Assembly: GCA_038496445.1 (NCBI GenBank) | Contig: JALMLS010000194.1 | Span: 149,813 to 213,812 of the forward strand | From: Trichosphaerium sp. ATCC 40318 | Lineage: Eukaryota; Protista; Tubulinea | DNA: 64,000 nt | Direction of reading: 5' to 3' | Shown here: positions 3,611 through 39,774 of the stretch, piece by piece | How positions within the stretch are numbered: position 1 is the first letter of the stretch | Layout of the letters: each line of letters starts with the position of its first letter | Notes under the pieces: model-generated | Database searches by the model: none | Told to the model about the DNA's origin: nothing | The model's input: the letters and a program-made list of their open reading frames with translations, nothing else | Translations under genes and position numbers: made by a program

Positions 3611-4725
3611 CGTCTGTGCCAAGGCTTCTGTAACCAAGCAAGGTGTGCAAAACTCCTAAAGGATTATACATTTAGTCATCTTCACCTTACTCTTATTGGC
3701 AGCTAGCCAGTGTTTGGTGGGTGTGTGGTGGACAACTTTCCTTTTTTCTTGTATACCATGCCAAAACCCAGTGAGCTGGGCAGTTGGTTGTCACACAATT
3801 ACTATATTTTTAATTTCCACTTTTCACTAAGTACCCTTTTTCTTGTGCTACTGATATGCTTCCTCAAACACTATTCTCACAGGTGCTATTTGGTGCTTTC
3901 TCTCCTTGCTAGGTTTTCAACTACTTTCATGTGTATTTTGCTGTGATTACAACTCCAACACAGTCTCACAGCCATGTAATTCAATATTTGGCCCAATCTC
4001 AATGCCACATCACTAATTCAGTAAGTCAGTAATTATCATCACTTGCAATATGTCAAAGCATGGTGCACCACCTGACAACTCTACAAACAACAGCTACATA
4101 GTTAAGGACCCTTTCAAGAAGCATACCTGTCAGAAACCACCAGGCCAATCAAGTAATGGTACAATATTTATCGGCTTTAGTGTAGAGCTTATTGATGCTT
4201 TCAATGGTCGTTTTCTTAAGGTTTGCTCTTGTTTAGGCAACTAACCTGCTGTCATTTCTTCAGTCTATGTCAGCTTTGTTGAAATTGTGTTGTCCATGCT
4301 GGGAAGTTCTGGACAGGTACACATCTGGTTCAAATGTTGAGTTGGGTGATTTTAGCATGCATGACAATCAGTTTTCATCTGAATCACATGTCCATGTGCA
4401 ATTATCTTCTATTATGCACAAACACGGTTTGGTAGATGTTGCTTTTTGGTACAGTTCATTCTGTCACACAGTTTCACTTCTACATCAGGTACTCTTAGCT
4501 GCATTGACTATGTATTTGTCTGCCATGAGTGTCCAAAGTGACAAGTGAGGAGACACCTTCACCTCACCAAAAGTCTTAAAAACAAGCAAGCATCTCAGCA
4601 TATTAAGGAGTTTTGTTGTTCTGCAATCATTCAGTGATTCTTGACTTCCAGGTTGCTTAGTACAGGTCTGTTTTATTATAAGTAAAATCTTTATGCCAAT
4701 TGATTGATGAATCAGGTATGGACAC

Positions 4726-4864
4726 CAGTACTGGAATCGGGATTTTGACCAGTACTAAACCCATACAAAACCCATACTTTTTACCCATACTTAACCTGTA
4801 CGGGTTCTGTATTGTTGATCCATACTCTGCCTGTACATTATCCATACTCCTGATTTTACTACTG
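4726..4864 (+). mobile_element. CAGTA-ended MITE, copy 1 (TSD AC)
   Basis: Starts CAGTACTGGAATCGGGA and ends TCCTGATTTTACTACTG (imperfect TIR); internal AACCCRTAC-like tandem units; flanked by AC/AC. Confidence 0.85.
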
Positions 4865-4899
4865 ACATTTCTATCCTATTGGACTGTGTTATGCAAAGA

Positions 4900-5160
4900 T
4901 TGTATCTCAGTAAGAATGTCAAAACCCATCACCCTTAAAGAAATCTTGGAAACCATCAAGTCTATGTCTTCAAACAAAACTTCAGGCCCTGATGAAGTAT
5001 CTATGTGTTTGAACAAAGATTTGGGCTCTTTTATTGCTAGGCATCTATGTCCCCTGTTCAATGACATCATGCAAGGTTTTGATCATGAATGGTTTGGTAG
5101 AGGTATTATATATCCATTATACAAAATTAACTAATTTCCTTCTATCCTTCTCTTGCTTAA
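4900..5160 (+). pseudogene. Non-LTR retrotransposon (LINE) reverse-transcriptase fragment
   Basis: PITLKEILETIKSMSSNKTSGPDEV...LCPLFNDIM...W...IIYPLYK matches the conserved pre-RT region of LINE ORF2 (K.pGpD, lfN, W, ipK); broken by a stop and by MITE copy 2. Confidence 0.8.
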
Positions 5161-5437
5161 CAGTACTGGAATCAGGATTTTGACCCATACTAAACCCGTA
5201 TGGAACCCGTACTTTTGACCTGTACTTAACCTGTATGGGTTCTGTACTTTTGACCCATACAAAACCTGTACAGAACCCATACTTTGACCCGTACTCAACC
5301 CGTACGGGTTCCGTAATTTTGACCTGGATTAAACCCATACGTAATCCATACTTTCGACCTGTACAAAACCCATATGGAATCTGTACTTTTTGACCTGTAC
5401 TCTACGTACATTATCCGTACTCCCGATTTTACTACTG
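5161..5437 (+). mobile_element. CAGTA-ended MITE, copy 2, longer internal array (TSD AA)
   Basis: Same ends as copy 1, more internal ACCCGTAC-like units; flanked by AA/AA. Confidence 0.87.
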
Positions 5438-6089
5438 AAGCACTCTTGCTTCATTTCTTGGTTCTCCACCACCAACCAATCAAGCACACCCTGCTGTCCA
5501 AATACCTTCTGTCTGTCAACAAATAAGTGCTCAAACCTTGGTGTCCTCTCAACTTCAGATGAAACCCTCAAAGATCATGACTTCAAGTAAAAAAATGGTC
5601 AAGTGAATGGTTTACAAAGGTGAATAGTGGTAATTTAACAAAGTATCAAAAAAAGCAATTAAATATCAAAAAATCAATCCATTCACTGATAAAATTACAT
5701 AAAGATCTCAAACAATGAATTTTCACTCAAATAAGCAGTAGTACAGATTCTTTAAAAAACAAAGTATGGCCCACTATTGGTACAATGTCCAGTGACCCTT
5801 TTTAAGGCAAAAATGATAGAAAATAGATATTTAGGATAGTTTAAGGATATTATGGCTCAATAACTCCATTAAACCTCTTTTTAAAGACAATTATTGGATT
5901 TGAGATTTTTTGCCTAATTAAGTAAGTTCTTGCTTAAGTATTTATGATAAGGCAGGATTGGCGAAAAAAGCAGGTAAAATGGCAAAAACATGAAGTTGGT
6001 TGATATAAACTGGGTACGATTGTTTATGTGGGGATAGTTTTATGTAAAGTTTGTAATAATTGTACCAAACCTCTTTGTAATTGTTATGT

Positions 6090-6193
6090 CAGTAGTAAAA
6101 TCGGGAGTACGGGGCATGTACGGGTTTAATCCGTGTCAAAAGTACAGGTCATGTATGGGTTTAGTACAGGTCAAAATTCTAATTCCAGTACTG
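6090..6193 (-). mobile_element. CAGTA-ended MITE, copy 3, short and inverted (TSD GT)
   Basis: CAGTAGTAAAATCGGGA ... TTCCAGTACTG is the reverse complement of copies 1 and 2; flanked by GT/GT. Confidence 0.85.
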
Positions 6194-6244
6194 GTGCTTG
6201 TATCATAATAAATCATCATTTTCTTTTCCTCTATAAAGTGGTGT

Positions 6245-31603: not shown

Positions 31604-34056
31604 ATGATTCTACGCGTTAGCCGTTCATATCGGCGTAGATGCGCATTAGTTAGAAATAAGCGAACGCTTTCAGTTGGAAATGGTAAAAATTCCTCCGCCT
31701 TAATTTACACTCCGTACAACCAACGCAGCTACTCCACTATGATAAAGGCACTTCAAGAAAAGGATTATGTAGACATGCTTAGCGACTACGCGAAAACTTT
31801 AAAGCAGAGTCCTATACGCTCGCTGTTTCCTCTATTAAAGATCCCTGGAATGGTATTACACTTTTTTTAAAACAGAATGTGTTGTCAGGCGCATTTTCTA
31901 TTTTTTTCGCTACAACGCTATTTTACGCTGTTTTATGTATCTAAGACATTCTCGATTACATTCTAACAATCATTTTACAGATTTCTCTTGGCGCCGGTAT
32001 TCCAAGCCCAGAAGCATTCCCTATCGCTGGTATAAGCGTGAAACTTACTGGAGGTATGTCAGCCGTTGTTTCCCCGCATTTTTATTCATAATCGTGTTAG
32101 GCGAGTCAGTTGATGTCCCAGAGGATATATTAAAGTCAGGCATGACTTACACATCATCCGTACGCCTATTCATCAACTTATAGCTGAAAAAAGTAACAAA
32201 GCTTAGAAAGGTCTCCCAAAGCTCGTAGAATGGATTATACAACATCAAATCGACGTACACTACCATAGACCAGCAGAAGATTGGGATGTATGCCTTACAA
32301 ACGGTTTGTTTAGAATCCAGAAAAAAATCCACAAACTAATGCTGTCAACCTACAGGAAGCCAAGATGGTATTTCAAAAATTTTTCAAATGTTATGTAATG
32401 AAGATGATATTGTACTATGCGATAATCCAATCTATGCGTACGTGGATAACGAGAAGCGATTACATTCGCATGATTAAGTTTCCACCTATTTTTTTTATTA
32501 TTATTTTGCGATTAAGGTTTTTTTAACAATCTCTTAGAGGTGCACGTGCAGCTATGGGTATAATCAAGTGCCATGGTGTTGAAACAGATCAACATGGTCT
32601 AGTCCCAGAGGCCCTACAAAAAACACTAGAAGAGTGGCCAGACAAGGCAACCAAACCAAGAGTGCGTTTTCTTTTCTTGCTTCCAACTTTTTTTTTATCT
32701 TTTCTGTTCTCTATCGAACAACGCTTGACTAATCAATCTTATCTTAACGTTAATGGATTCTTTTAGGTTTTGTATACAGTTCCAACCGGTCAGAACCCTT
32801 CAGGAAGCACTTTGAGCCATGATAGGCGTAAACAGATTTTAAAAATTGCCTCAGATCACAACCTTATAATCCTTGAAGATGATCCGTACTGGTACGCAAG
32901 CAGCTTCATTTTCAAAACATAAGAATGAATTTAAAAGATTGTTTTTTTCTTCAAGTGTCACGTGTCATGAGTTATTAATACTTTGTTTGTATAGGTATCT
33001 TTGCCTTGGCGAGAACCCTGAGCCTATTGAGAGTCTAGCTTCAATGGACAAAGAAGGACGTGTATTGCGTTGTGATTCGTTCAGTAAAATTATCTCTCCT
33101 GGTCTTCGTCTCGGTTGGGTAACAGGCCCAAAACCCTTAGTAGCACGTATTCAATTATTGAATCAACGTACTGTTATACATGCATCAGGTAATATATTGC
33201 GATTATTTCAAAGAAAACAACACGTGCTTGCGAACTCAGCAGAGGTCAACAAACTGTTTTTTTTTTTTTGTTTTGCACTTGTTTCCCTTTTTGCTTTGTT
33301 GCTTGTTTGGTTTGTTGATGTTTTTTTTCTTTTGTTAAGGTATTAGCCAAGCTATCGTATTGTCTATATTACAGAGTTGGGGAAAAGAAGGATTTGCAAA
33401 ACACGTGAAAGAGTTACAGGCGTTGTATACAAAAAAACGCGATGCTATACTGTCGTTTTGTACCAAGTATTTGACTGGTCTAGCAACATGGCACACCCCT
33501 AGAGCTGGTATGTTTGTTTGGATTAAACTGACAGGTATCGATGATTCCGAAGATCTAATCCGTAACCACGCAGTTAAGGCTAAGGTACGCACATGACTTG
33601 ATTTTGATTCAAACATTACTTTACCTCACACGTTTTTTTTTTTCAGGTTATATTTTTATGGGGTGCTTCTTGTTCTCCTTCTGGCGAAAAATCGCCATAT
33701 GTTCGTGCAGCGTTTTCCTTGGCATCTATTGAGGTGCGATATTGTCCATTTTCTCATTTTTTTCTCTGATTTCAAAAAAAAAAATTGGAGCGACCGAGCC
33801 TTTTTTTTGTTGTGCTCAGTCGACTGAGCGTTAGCCTTTTAAGTACATGGTTAAGCGTGCAGTCTTTTTCTGTCGCTAATTCGTTATTTTACTCATCGGT
33901 AGAGCTGTTTCCTTGTTTTTCTTGGTCTACAAGAAAATTATCATAAAATTATCACAAAATTTTTTCGAGTTTTTTGGATTAGTATTAATTGTGATTTAAT
34001 AGCAAATGGAAGAAGGTATCAAGAGGCTTGCAAGTGTATTAAAAGATAGAAAGTAG
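31604..34056 (+). CDS. AADAT: Kynurenine/2-aminoadipate aminotransferase (PLP class I)
   Basis: SPIRSL, GSQDG, PTGQNPSG, EDDPY, DSFSKIISPGLRLGW, AGMFVW, YVRAAFS, MEEGIKRLA. Confidence 0.92.
33792..33927 (+). repeat. Intronic structured repeat element, copy A (last AADAT intron)
   Basis: About 95% identical to the reverse complement of 35065-35202; terminal GACCGAG/CTTGGTC inverted repeat; internal palindrome GCTCAGTCGACTGAGC. Confidence 0.9.
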
Positions 34057-34686
34057 ATAATAACAAAATAAATAATTTCATTTGAAAAAAACGTGTTTTT
34101 TTATTTGCATTCAAAAAGTTGAATACTGTTAAACTAAACAAGTCACGCCCCTATTTAAAGGTCACGTAATGTTCAGAATAATCACGGAATAAAGAGTTAT
34201 CTATGTCAGCCTTTGCTACACTTCATTTTCTTCAACTGAGAATCCTTAAAACGTTCGAGTCTTAGAAAAAGTCAGGCTGTGTTTTTCAAGATAGACAATA
34301 ACGCAGGAGTCAAATCCATCGCTAAAACGTCATTGCGGTCTTGATTTAAGGTATTGTAGCACAAACCTCAGAGAATTGGGATGTGATACCAGTTAGGCAT
34401 ACGGGTGGATTCAGTGCAAGACCCACGGGGTCAGCGACTAGAAGAAAAATAAATAAATAAAAAATTAGCACTTAGTTTGCGCTACCGAGTGTTTTTCAAA
34501 GTGATAACTGACTCATCGATAGTCTGTATGTAGCCAACAAGCATATAAATCGCATGTAAATTATCACTAGCTCTACAAGTATAAGGCGTAAGAAGAAAAG
34601 GAGTTAATAAAACATACTTGCTCTATTGATTGCCTTGATTTGTAGTTTTTCTACTATCGGGTTCTTGTGCAATAGGGATGAATACT

Positions 34687-36909
34687 TCATGTCGGTGTAA
34701 GTGTAGTAAACAATTGGTTGAGACATTTATGCAACCACCTTAGAAATAAAGTGAACAACCACCAAACTGTGAATTTTCCTGTTGAAAATTCCTTTCTCTC
34801 TTACCTTTGCAGAGCTCTTTTTTTCTTGTCATTAAAATTTTCCATTCTCCATTCGAAATGCGGATACAGCAGTTCAACGCACTGAGGAAAAGGTACTAGA
34901 GCAACACGTGATGTTGTAGTAAGAGCGCTTCCATTGTTATCAACAATCTGGCTCTCTGCAACACGATACCAGTCTGTAACATGACAGATCTTCAGTTTCT
35001 TTTCTAGTGCTAAGAATGTATTTAGAATTTTTTCCACAAAGTAGGGTTTTTAGCTTTGTTTGGCGACCAAGAAAAAACAAGGAAAAAAGCTCTACCGATG
35101 AGTAAAATAACGAATAAGTGACAGAAAAAGACTGCACGCTTAACCATGTGCTTAAAAGGCTAACGCTCAGTCGACTGAGCGCAACAAAAAAAAGGCTCGG
35201 TCTACGAAAGTTTTTTGAAAATATGAAAGAAAACCCGCTCAATTGGCGTACATTTCAGATATGTCACAATGTTTTTTGGATTATGCCAGTATCGAGTTGG
35301 TGCTGCACTAATAAAAAAGAAGACTTAAGAATAAAAAACCTAAAATGTGTTCATAGAGTCATCTCGTACAGGAACCGCCATTCTTGCCATCTATACTCTG
35401 GGAATATATTCTTTAGCATACGAGTTAAAGATTGGCCAAACCTTTATAACTAGTCAGTACAACTAAAGAACAAGAACAAGATTTCTTGTTTACCTAGCAG
35501 CCAAACCACCACCATGAGCTGTTTGTACATTTGTCACGGTTACTTTATACCAATCGTCCATAACCTTAACTTTAAGCTTGCGTGCAATAGTGTTCATATG
35601 GCTTTGTCGATTATACAATTCACTCCAATGTCCTTTCCGCACGTGGCTGTAGAAATAAGAAAAAGAAAAAAAATCTTCACGTGAAAAAAAAAAAAAGAAA
35701 AAGAAGGCTTACGCAAACTTTGTTACATCCCAATTATGTGATGGGTATAACGCTTGTAAAGTTGTTCCAAGATGACTATTATGTCTAAATATTATATGAA
35801 TAAAAACACATTGTGGTGGATGTCAATGAATCATTTTTTTGCTGCACTTTTTGAAACTTTGAAAAATTGGGCTTACTTTGAGATGACGTGCTTGCTCCCG
35901 TATTTCAGTATATCCTCATTTATACACTTGTACCAATCATCAAGTACTTTAATAACAAGCTTAGCTCCAATATGATCCATAAACGTGCGTTGCATAGGCA
36001 AAGACCAAAAGTGTCTCGGCATTGGTCTAGTAAATGTCAGCTTCATTTTACACTCAAAATGTATAAAAAAAACCAAACAAAACAAATCAATGAAGCGAAC
36101 CTAAAGTCCCATAACAGCCACTCTATTTCTGGATACACGGCGTACAATGCTTTTCTCAAGGAGTACCCATATCTACGAGAAGAGTTAACCGCCCTCAAGC
36201 GAGAAAAGGTAATAACCAATGTCGGCAACAATAAAAATGATGAAACAACTTTAAATCTTACCTGCTGAGCAAACCACTGCCTCCACTTCCAACAACTGAA
36301 ATTGTGGGCGTGTCATACCAATCACTTGTTATATGCACGCGCATACGCGGTGCTAGTACGTCTTTTACCTCCTGTTAGCGTTTGTTTAGGTAAAATGTTG
36401 TTTGTACCGTCAAAAAAGCTGCGTTGGTGTTCCAGGCTATTCCAATAGCCCGATGATGCCTGTCCTGGCTTATATATTGTCCTTACGCCTAATGTATCAT
36501 TTTTTCGATGTCCTTTGGCTACAATATACAGTTTACGTGATCCAACGTGCGTTATCATGTCTAAAAGGTACAAATTGTAGTCAACATTGTTATTTTGTTT
36601 CTAAATAAGAGGTACATACGCACCTGGTACGTGGGAGTAGCCACCTCGTGTCTGATGCGTACGGCAACGTTTAGAGAGTGTGCGACATCTAAATTAAACC
36701 GCCAAAACACCACAACTGTTACAAGTGTTGATTCTTCACCTTAGTAGATATTTGACGATTTTGTTGGCATTTAACGCTTGAATGGATAAAAAGAGACAAA
36801 CGTATCACGCCAACGATAGTTTATATAGCTAGTACGCTACTAGTAGTACTCCCGACACTGATAGGTGAGAATAGAAGCCAAAAAGCGTTTTGGGTTGTTT
36901 ACACAACAT
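34687..36909 (-). CDS. Uncharacterised helical-repeat protein (yW..l..qR.f.d...kl.....DDWY repeats); start uncertain
   Basis: Repeats GYWNSLEHQRSFFD, HFWSLPMQRTFMDHIGAKLVIKVLDDWY, GHWSELYNRQSHMNTIARKLKVKVMDDWY, LEKKLKICHVTDWY. Confidence 0.7.
35065..35202 (-). repeat. Intronic structured repeat element, copy B (intron of helical-repeat gene)
   Basis: Inverted near-identical copy of 33792-33927. Confidence 0.9.
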
Positions 36910-36952: not shown

Positions 36953-37026
36953 GCTTCCGTAGCTCAGTTGGTTAGAGCGCACGACTGTTAATCGTGAGGT
37001 CGTAGGTTCGACCCCTACCGGGAGCG
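36953..37026 (+). tRNA. tRNA-Asn (GTT)
   Basis: Acceptor GCTTCCG/CGGGAGC, D-arm TAGCTCAGTTGGTTAGAGC, anticodon arm CACGA-CTGTTAA-TCGTG, T-loop GGTTCGACCC, downstream T-run. Confidence 0.97.
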
Positions 37027-37324: not shown

Positions 37325-39774
37325 ATGACAACAACTCAACAAGAAGCACTTACAGGTAACTTTGCGCCTGTCTCTGCGGAGACAACGGCCAATAACCTAA
37401 GTGTCATTGAAGGTAATCAAAACCGTGCGATATACGCCCTAACATACCCATAGGCTCTATACCGAAAGATTTAGACGGTTTATTCGTCAGTACGTTAACT
37501 ATTCAGCAATTCTAGCCCACGCTCAATTTCTGCTTAGGAAATGGACCTAATCCGCAGTATCCTCCTGTCAAGTACGTTTTTATGGTTTTAATAGCTTCTA
37601 TGCATCATAACACTCATTGTAGGGGTTATCACTGGTTTATGGGTGCGTTGGCGTATGATTGACGCCTTTTATAACTTTTTTAGGTGATGGCATGCTTCAT
37701 GCTGTCCGTTTTTCCGCTAGTCAAGCATCGTTCATCAACAGGCAAGTTTTTTGGGTGTTATTAGTGCCATTGTTTGTTTTTAATGTTGCTTGCAGGTTTG
37801 TCCAGACTGAAGCGTATCTGTACGAAAAGAAGCTTGGTAGAGCTTACTTTTATTCCATCTTTACGGATATGATCGGTATTCCGTACGTAAAAAGATACTT
37901 GGCCTCAAAAGAATCACGTGTTGTTAACCGGTTTTTTTCATCCGAATATTTTGGTTATTTTCTTGCTTTTGTTCGCATCTCCAGTCTTTCGAATAAAACA
38001 CTTATTTCATGGAGGTTTTGTGCTTACTGAGGTTGTTTAGGAGTGTAATTAGCATGATGTATCATAGTGCAAGAACATCATACCTTGGTGGAGCACCAAA
38101 TCCTTGGAAGAGTACGAATACTTTGTTCTTCACTCTACTACCTCACCGCTCCTGTTTTCCTTCTCACAATCGTTACAAATAGAGAGAACAGCAAATACAG
38201 CTCTAGTCTATCACGACAAGTGAGTAACCGTTTATTATCGCAAGTGCTCTTTCTTGACAGTTTTTCTCTAGGCGACTTATGGCACTTGTTGAAGGAGATG
38301 TACCAACATGGGTCATGGCACAGACCCTTGATACTATCGGTCCATATAATTATAACAACAAGCTTACACACGCATTCACTGCTCATCCTAAGGTAATGTT
38401 CTCGCTGTTTAGGCGAGATACTCCTCATCGCGAAGTGACCACTTTCTTTTGTTGTTCATTCTTTTTTTTAGGTTGATCCTGAGACAGGTGAGATGATCTT
38501 CTTCGGTTATGATGCGACAACACCGTACATAAAATACAACACCGTGAGTAAAGAAGGTAAACTATCAGATGATGTGAAGGTTAAGGTTCAAGCACCTATC
38601 ATGGTACGACAACACATTTGTTCCTTCAAACAGCTTTTTTTCTAAAACAATTGTTTTAGATGCACGATTGCGCTATCACGAAGAACCATACAATCTTTTT
38701 GGACTTACCTATGGTTTATGATGGTAAAAAGGCTGCGATGACTGATGGTCTTATTGGCACATTCAGACCTGAGCTACCATCGAGGATAGGTATTGGGGAG
38801 AGACACATGAAGGCAAGTGTTTCAGCCGAACAGTTCTTTTTTTTTTGATAAAAATGTTAACAACAAGTGGTTAGGACGATACAAAAATCAAGTGGTTTGA
38901 GCTCCCTTCTTTTTATATGTATCATACAGCAAATGCTTGGGAAGAAGGATCAAAAGTCCATTTATATGGTAGCAGATATGCTAAACTACCTTTCGACTTG
39001 AGCTTCGTAGGAAGGAAGGACGTAAGTGTTTTATTTTGTATTTTTTTTTTGGGCGAAAACTGACGTAAGTCTTCTTGTAGTTTGGCGTCATGCATCATTG
39101 GTGCTTTGACTTAAAAACAGGAAAAGTAGAAGAAGAACCTATAATGCCAAGTGATTATGATACAGAGTTTCCAGTAATCAATAATGACTACCTTGGAAGG
39201 AAGTGCCAGTAAGTTCAAATAATGAACCTTTTTTCATCTTCATCACGTTTCACTCTCATTATTTGCTAGATTCTCATACTATGCTATACGCACATCTAGT
39301 GCTTTACAGCACTATAATGGAGTTGAAAAAATAGATTTAGAAACTAAAGGTAGGCCACTATCAGCCTGTTGTTAGGAGACTGTACAAAACAAATATTAAC
39401 TTTTTTATTCGTAGAAAAAACACGTTGGCTGCATGGCAGTGATAGGTATGGTGGTGAATTTGTATTTGTTAAAAAAACATCCGGGTGTGACACTGAGGAT
39501 GATGTACGTATAGAAAATTATGTGATTTTTGTTGACAGTTGTATGTTAAGGGTTACTTGGTTGGATATGTTTATGATGAGACAAAGAACAATTCTGAGGT
39601 ACCTTCCTTCTTACTGCGCTTTACTAAAACTCTGTTTTTTTTCTTAAGGTTGTTGTTCTTTCTGCTCTCGATATGTCTCTTGTTTGTCGTGTGGCACTCT
39701 CTCAACGTGTTCCTTACGGTTTTCATGGATTGTGGGTTACTAAGGATCAACTAAATATGCAACGATCAGCATAA
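37325..39774 (+). CDS. Carotenoid oxygenase (CCD/RPE65/lignostilbene dioxygenase family)
   Basis: GNFAPV, RNGPNP, HWFMGDGMLH, FTAHPKVDPETGE, MHDCAIT, YHTANAWEE, EFPVIN, GEFVFV, VPYGFHG (all four Fe-binding His). Confidence 0.93.

Follow-up and report, generated by a model that had tools for sequence, protein, structure and literature searches.

An inverted pair of ~137-bp intronic units in two convergent genes of Trichosphaerium sp.

Two core copies in introns of convergent genes

In the window (the whole 64-kb stretch of DNA that was analysed), the last intron of AADAT on the plus strand and an intron of a convergent repeat-domain gene on the minus strand, here called intron B, each hold one copy of the same sequence, which we call the core. 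The features of the locus are as follows.

33734 to 34002, plus strand: last AADAT intron, GT..AG, 269 nt, phase 0
33792 to 33927, plus strand: core copy A, 136 nt, sense to AADAT
33814 to 33829, no strand assigned: perfect 16-nt palindrome GCTCAGTCGACTGAGC in copy A, found by pattern search
34003 to 34056, plus strand: last AADAT exon, 17 codons and TAG, encoding the ancestral C-terminus
34805 to 35053, minus strand: exon following intron B, a complete repeat unit with an in-frame TAA near its start (35050 to 35052)
35054 to 35369, minus strand: intron B of the repeat-domain gene, GT..AG, 316 nt, phase 2
35065 to 35202, minus strand: core copy B, 138 nt, sense to the repeat-domain gene
35165 to 35180, no strand assigned: second occurrence of palindrome GCTCAGTCGACTGAGC, in copy B, found by pattern search
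35370 to 35441, minus strand: exon preceding intron B, the second half of a repeat unit, ending in W-R-F

In pairwise alignment, we found that copies A and B are 95–96% identical, and they are the sole pair of at least 50 nt at 90% identity within the window. They are inverted with respect to each other with 1137 nt between them, in agreement with the original prediction of inverted twins about 1.14 kb apart, each sense to the pre-mRNA of its own host gene. Identity falls from 95% to background precisely at the GACCGAG/CTTGGTC termini, and the inverted ends of the core (7 nt, 6/7 complementary) lie at these exact limits. Among random 137-nt segments of the window, only 0.23% have 7-mer ends that form an inverted repeat with no more than one mismatch; thus, the inverted ends are a real feature. 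The terminal stem, the palindrome and the lack of a TSD were each seen at both copies as predicted, with no direct repeat around copy A or copy B, and the window contains one other perfect 16-nt palindrome, at 38643. A predicted TAAGCG...CGCTAA stem is present but imperfect, with one mismatch per copy at differing positions. We rejected the idea that the core termini are palindrome half-sites, as GACCGAGC and GACTGAGC match at 7/8 positions, which is not significant (chance approximately 0.09).

Copy A begins 58 nt past the donor of the AADAT intron and stops 75 nt short of its acceptor. This intron is confirmed as the last of AADAT and in phase 0, while intron B, predicted to be in phase 1, is in phase 2. 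The U-rich 3' tract of copy B stops 11 nt before the AG of intron B. Intron B lies after a W-x-F motif, the same position as a 74-nt intron in the preceding repeat unit (36027–36100), and compared to this homologous intron one repeat unit upstream, both host introns (269 and 316 nt) are enlarged. The exon after intron B opens with C and TAA, so the assembled reading frame terminates directly past the intron. Searches were run with the exons individually. Identity to the best protein relatives does not exceed 58%, and the C-termini of homologues P0004, P0008, P0012 and P0017 match the translation of the last AADAT exon.

The core is 42% GC and 15% A, as compared to 23–34% GC and 31–35% A in the remainder of both introns (for copy A, 42% GC against 23% in the rest of the AADAT intron). 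Because its composition differs from that of both introns, the core is an insert and not a duplicated stretch of ordinary intron. When we tabulated the core across the 70-Mb genome by BLAST, as had been proposed, we found two copies, both intronic and without a TSD; searches with the palindrome pattern and with a covariance model (E ≤ 10) likewise gave these two only. Two genomic copies make the core neither a family of MITEs nor a family of RNAs. The terminal 17-mer of the core, allowing up to two mismatches, is no commoner in the genome than a control pattern, and its recurrent near-matches sit within unrelated duplicated segments. There was no exact 23-mer match in metagenome, viral and prokaryote contigs, and no relative of the AADAT exon in the metagenome contigs. 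As a passenger insertion, the core pair would be a rare TSD-less two-copy unit of a kind that standard repeat annotation would overlook.

Repair-associated template switching, which requires no discrete element, could have copied an arbitrary stretch of one intron into the other. Such an inverted templated insertion would account for a copy that is unique, nearby, inverted and without a TSD. However, the core composition is unlike that of both introns, the boundaries fall at a 7-nt inverted repeat of a kind that few random segments carry, and the junctions show no microhomology in the sense configuration (0 anchored matches on each side). We therefore consider template switching unlikely.

Flanks of the copies and the proposed inversion of the intervening segment

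On the plus strand, the flanks of copies A and B share GC (2 nt) to the left of the core and TAC (3 nt) to its right. The similarity of outer flanks described in the original prediction is thus present at GC and TAC but does not extend beyond these 5 nt. Anchored identity that large has a chance of approximately 0.005, uncorrected for the several comparisons that were tried. When 12-nt flanks were aligned locally, their score against random site pairs gave p = 0.04–0.06, and the sense-strand configuration of the flanks scores nearly as high (p = 0.08–0.11).

The flanks had been read as swapped by an inversion. This reading fails because the segment between the copies holds the exon that encodes the ancestral C-terminus of AADAT, already in working orientation. 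It follows that today's order is the original and that the flanks date from insertion. Undoing an inversion would restore 2-bp TSDs (GC/GC and TA/TA), an arithmetic that holds because GC and TA are self-complementary; we rejected these TSDs since they would need the ancestral AADAT exon to have been inverted. A 1.4-kb transposon with 137-bp TIRs (33792–35202) was also rejected, since its interior is the ancestral last AADAT exon and there is no outer TSD.

As a functional recombination switch, the pair would invert positions 33928–35064, swap the terminal exons between the two genes and so switch off AADAT. Inverted repeats do flank the would-be invertible segment, and arms of 137 bp at 95% identity have sufficient length for homologous recombination, so this part of the predicted recombination substrate stands even though the swapped-flank argument for it does not. 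That inverted repeats can mediate inversions is well established for other genomes (PMC3961182). Against a switch, the assembly shows one orientation only, the ancestral functional one, and contains no second haplotype of the locus; the flank match is short; and, from the intron frames, the inverted state would yield only out-of-frame tails. We regard such a switch as extremely improbable, and give as little credence to the idea that the arms recombine in living cells and flip the 1.14-kb segment as a reversible, DNA-level off switch for AADAT. We found no sign that the core pair works in this way. Were the segment to flip, it would represent a novel type of gene switch in eukaryotes, for which we found no support here.

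The inverted pair could also act at the RNA level, where convergent read-through would produce a 137-bp hairpin RNA that leads to RNA interference or modulates 3' ends. Geometry alone suggests this, as the inverted arms stand 1137 nt apart around both 3' ends. However, both terminal exons are downstream of the introns that hold the arms, which leaves a normal pre-mRNA of either gene with one arm only, and we think a hairpin role very unlikely.

The core copies as candidate RNA genes

The copies may instead be two paralogous genes for a lineage-specific, intron-encoded structured small RNA. Each RNA would be freed from its host intron and would adopt a mature fold made up of the 7-bp terminal stem and three to four hairpins; the role would be something other than guiding rRNA modification. 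Both copies are intronic and sense, and the predicted fold consists of a terminal stem and hairpins. Compared to shuffled sequences, the folding z-scores are modest, at –1.8 and –2.9 on the sense strand and –1.6 and –2.0 on the antisense strand. A consensus structure has no broken pairs and two one-sided wobble changes: the two substitutions that fall in predicted helices retain pairing on the sense strand (U-G/C-G and U-G/U-A), and the remaining differences between A and B sit in loops and in the 3' U tract. RNA genes in AT-rich genomes are typically GC-richer than their surroundings, and the core is a GC-richer island inside AT-rich introns.

Several results count against an RNA gene. In the minimum-energy fold of copy A, a C-G pair is broken by the G84A change of copy B, so the support from the substitutions depends on the structure chosen. 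The proposed covariation analysis found no compensatory pair between the two copies. In the proposed Rfam search, the best scores were 6–19 bits against thresholds of 34–95 bits (E = 0.4–7), and no family was assigned at E ≤ 10. We inspected both strands for a C box (RUGAUGA) and a D box (CUGA) by the terminal stem and found no sense C box; all that the antisense strand offers is a CCGAUGA-like word that no stem flanks. For a C/D guide of at least 10 nt, the longest Watson-Crick runs to rRNA (SSU, 5.8S and LSU) are 10–12 nt, equal to those of shuffled controls. There is no ANANNA hinge of the H/ACA type, ACA lies outside both cores at differing offsets, and the core fold is closed by its terminal stem, unlike the hairpin-hinge-hairpin-tail of H/ACA RNAs. 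Finally, there is no known protection of a box-less intron fragment against exonucleases. The predicted intronic ncRNA family thus loses its family and its points of contact with known RNAs, and what is left of it, a lineage-specific RNA with two genes, is possible but doubtful. We hold it equally doubtful that the cores are genes for a box-less class of structured, intron-encoded RNA with no known representative outside this amoeba. If a stable RNA is made, it would be a new RNA class from a poorly studied amoeba lineage.

Other identities were rejected. The core has a tRNA D-arm-like word, but a tRNA-derived SINE does not fit, as ARAGORN found no tRNA in the cores and Pol III would terminate at the T8 runs of the sense strand. 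An antisense Pol III gene fits no better: the two upstream flanks have nothing in common, and no convincing A or B box was seen; the antisense strand of the cores has no T run of at least 4, and T runs come 7–9 nt downstream. Some antisense words, which we took to be hammerhead-like or U12-like, misfit the core positions, and Rfam gives nothing for them. The sense frame is open across both cores; a cassette exon was rejected given three non-synonymous against one synonymous A/B change and no splice sites at the ends.

A possible locally copied insert and its relation to known systems

Taken together, these data lead us to prefer, tentatively, a discrete DNA unit that is foreign in composition, was copied once locally and is tolerated in introns. 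The core would be a non-coding unit of 136–138 bp with 7-bp imperfect inverted ends, not native intron sequence, that was probably copied a single time, over approximately 1.1 kb, into the opposite orientation. This one inverted local copying would explain why the core is now in introns of two convergent genes. We infer the direction and the enzymology of the copying, as well as the lack of function. The copy could have arisen when a non-autonomous element, its partner enzyme either lost or unrecognisable, hopped locally, or an excised or reverse-transcribed copy could have been captured at a nearby break. Both copies would be passengers that persist because they are intronic, because their U-rich strand is the one transcribed, as in the host introns, and because base pairing between their ends can loop out the insert. 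The U-rich tail of copy B lies at the place in intron B expected for the polypyrimidine tract of the 3' splice site.

The core has no mark of a known RNA, in line with a passenger. Against a passenger, the MITE definition fails (no TSD, a 7-bp TIR, two copies and no longer related element); both copies are sense, which has a chance of 0.5 under neutrality yet is required of an intron-processed RNA; both helix substitutions keep pairing on the sense strand; and RNA genes in AT-rich genomes typically show raised GC as well. Of the predicted TSD-less mobile element, the discrete unit foreign to both introns stands, while its GC^TAC target, drawn from two copies and 5 nt, does not. If the core is a passenger, its interest is local: it would show that the inserts tolerated by short-intron genomes are ones whose sense strand is U-rich and whose ends self-pair, and would be an example of an insert taken over as a polypyrimidine tract.

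The copies resemble intron-encoded snoRNAs in being sense within enlarged introns, near H/ACA size, closed by a terminal stem and present in different introns. In contrast to C/D and H/ACA snoRNAs, they lack boxes in the proper places, have a closed multi-hairpin fold and have no rRNA target above chance. Inversions mediated by inverted repeats, as described for human polymorphic inversions (PMC3961182), F8 intron 22 (PMC9126152) and the Drosophila MITE BuT5 (PMC3698922), likewise involve inverted repeats, one or more of which lie in introns, with the potential to recombine and flip the intervening DNA; unlike in those systems, the core arms are only 137 bp, there is no known inverted allele and the present order is ancestral. 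Inverted intronic Alu pairs loop out exons at the RNA level (PMC13019027) and are similar in being inverted repeats in introns flanking exons. The Alu pairs, however, share one transcript and pair mutually, whereas the core arms are in separate convergent transcripts, the same strand in each. Like a MITE, the core is small, non-coding and intronic, with discrete ends that carry terminal inverted repeats; unlike a MITE, it has two copies, an imperfect 7-bp TIR (short for a MITE) and no TSD, is not a foldback overall, and has no related autonomous element that we could find. Introner elements are mobile elements that create introns and have hundreds of copies. The core differs from them in its two copies, in its position internal to introns of 269 and 316 nt and in having no splice sites at its ends; it resembles them in its U-rich 3' part at the polypyrimidine place of intron B and in its sense orientation in both hosts.

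Twin intronic copies in two convergent genes

The original prediction placed two near-identical, inverted elements in introns of the convergent AADAT and repeat-domain genes, and we found both by reading 33600-35400 directly, with a repeat finder and by alignment. The copies of the core and their host introns are:

33792-33927, + strand: copy A
35065-35202, - strand: copy B
33734-34002, + strand: last AADAT intron, GT-AG, 269 nt, phase 0
35369-35054, - strand: intron B, the repeat-domain gene intron containing copy B, GT-AG, 316 nt, phase 2

The copies lie 1137 nt apart and are 95-96% identical when aligned in the same sense, with 4 substitutions in the first 113 columns and a few more, plus a length difference of 2 nt, in the U-rich 3' tract. 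Identity stops sharply on each side, precisely at GACCGAG and CTTGGTC, which are mutual inverted complements save one G-T position; of random 137-nt segments drawn from the window, 0.23% have an inverted terminal 7-mer with at most one mismatch. As predicted, a perfect 16-nt palindrome is present in both copies, and the 64 kb hold only one more, at 38643. In the sense direction each core is preceded, at a distance of 7-9 nt, by a run of A (A11 and A6, at 33774-33784 and 35211-35216); these runs could pair with the U8 tract within the core and resemble Pol III terminators on the antisense strand, and their placement is probably a coincidence of low-complexity sequence. With the copies inverted, a hairpin RNA produced by read-through can be considered, and we judge it very improbable.

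Copy A starts 58 nt past the donor of the AADAT intron, whose predicted phase 0 holds, and stops 75 nt short of the acceptor. The final exon that follows has 17 codons and is the ancestral end of the AADAT protein, since its peptide matches the C-termini of full-length homologues retrieved with the preceding exon. Each exon was searched singly by reference, not as a spliced, joined model; the best AADAT relatives are at most 58% identical, and none was found in metagenome contigs.

The minus-strand gene consists of repeats of one domain, roughly 70-90 residues each, for which there is no Pfam model and which matches this genome at least 149 times; paralogues of the gene have several units within one exon. 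In the repeat region (34805-36230, -; stretches L012-L023) the domain motif reads DWYRVS...GG.G...YP..W..F, and a feature-based comparison likens it to hypothetical proteins from Discosea and Tubulinea. The stretch after the repeat domain in L023 (..LALEYQG.. ..GEQHY..) may resemble a PD-(D/E)XK nuclease motif. Intron B, predicted in phase 1, is in phase 2. Its donor lies 2 bases past the W-x-F motif, the place equivalent to the donor of the preceding unit's intron (36100-36027, 74 nt), and is therefore a genuine intron position. Copy B stops 11 nt short of the acceptor AG, which puts its U-rich tail at the place expected for the polypyrimidine tract of this 3' splice site. The next exon reads Leu-TAA, and the protein as assembled stops at this in-frame TAA (35050-35052, -), one codon past the acceptor; downstream, a repeat unit follows that is complete and well conserved, as does another GT donor at 34804. 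The TAA reflects either a recent loss of the gene's 3' part or a sequence error.

Copy number and the RNA reading

We searched the 70-Mb assembly (642 contigs) by BLAST with the whole unit, with the 2.4-kb locus and with the central 99 nt at E<=10, with the palindrome (1 mismatch) and the terminal 17-mer (2 mismatches), and with a covariance model built from copies A and B (E<=10). Every search recovered copies A and B, none returned a third or related copy, and the 17-mer near-matches that recur lie within unrelated duplicated segments. An exact 23-mer of the core has no match in metagenome, viral and prokaryote collections. With two copies only and nothing related, the proposed family of structured RNAs falls away; by the same searches the locus has neither an allele nor a paralogue in the assembly usable as an empty site. 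Contigs C251, C415 and C503 (stretches L037, L038 and L039) are near-identical over at least 1 kb, which makes them either haplotigs left uncollapsed or segmental duplicates of recent origin; the studied locus is without a second copy of this sort.

The main rival is an RNA specific to this lineage, box-less and encoded in introns by two genes; it is possible and on the unlikely side. Rfam, one of the checks proposed for an RNA, gave no near-threshold match even when searched with just the two cores at E<=10. ARAGORN found no tRNA in the cores; its sole prediction is an unrelated tRNA-Asn (GTT) at 36953-37026 (+), on the opposite strand and either within the repeat-domain gene or a short way upstream of it. 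By inspection, the cores lack a C box and an H box, and ACA does not recur at a constant distance from the core end. When both strands of both copies were compared with the genome's own rRNA operon, no complementarity exceeded that of shuffles (longest Watson-Crick 10-12 nt, G-U-tolerant 18 nt). The SSU rRNA gene (L006, G000:C481:320-2972) is strongly expanded, at ~2.65 kb against a 1831-position model, and the rDNA has at least 10 copies, each on separate contigs. Fold z-scores against dinucleotide shuffles show only a modest advantage (sense -1.8 and -2.9; antisense -1.6 and -2.0). The consensus structure of 33 pairs has 0 double changes, 2 one-sided wobble changes and 0 broken pairs, from two sequences, too few for testing a structure; when copy A is folded to minimum energy, however, one of these changes breaks a C-G pair.

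Flanks and the proposed inversion switch

The prediction of similar outer flanks stands in part: on the + strand GC precedes and TAC follows both copies, but beyond these 2+3 nt is low-complexity A/T, and sense-strand pairing scores close to the + strand configuration. The anchored 2+3-nt identity has a chance of ~0.005, uncorrected for several acceptable configurations, and local alignment of the 12-nt flanks gives p = 0.04-0.06. Undoing an inversion would yield 2-bp direct repeats, because GC and TA are self-complementary. We rejected this history because, had the segment flipped an odd number of times after the insertions, the AADAT exon would now be inverted, and the ancestral exon is in working orientation; this also rules out the 1.4-kb span as a single long-TIR transposon.

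Thus the swapped-flank argument for a switch exchanging 3' exons fails, while its recombination part survives: inverted repeats recombine in other genomes (PMC3961182), and arms A and B could do so. The inverted state would give both genes nothing but out-of-frame tails, and no observation here indicates that it occurs. A functional inversion switch is the least credible reading.

A possible discrete insert

The core has 42% GC and 15% A, and the remainder of both introns 23-34% GC and 31-35% A; this foreign composition argues for an insert at both sites over the copying of some ordinary intron sequence. An arbitrary templated insertion is improbable. The most economical reading, put tentatively, is that one discrete DNA unit was copied a single time across a short distance; it would persist because introns tolerate it when the U-rich strand is the transcribed strand and the ends can pair. 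Elsewhere in the window, direct and inverted repeats that have diverged cluster at 4723-6196 (71-123 nt, 71-82% identity).

The core is not classed as a MITE, because neither copy has a target-site duplication, as predicted, there are two copies only and no longer element related to it turned up; with MITEs it shares sharp ends and short inverted termini, and it behaves as a small non-autonomous insert.
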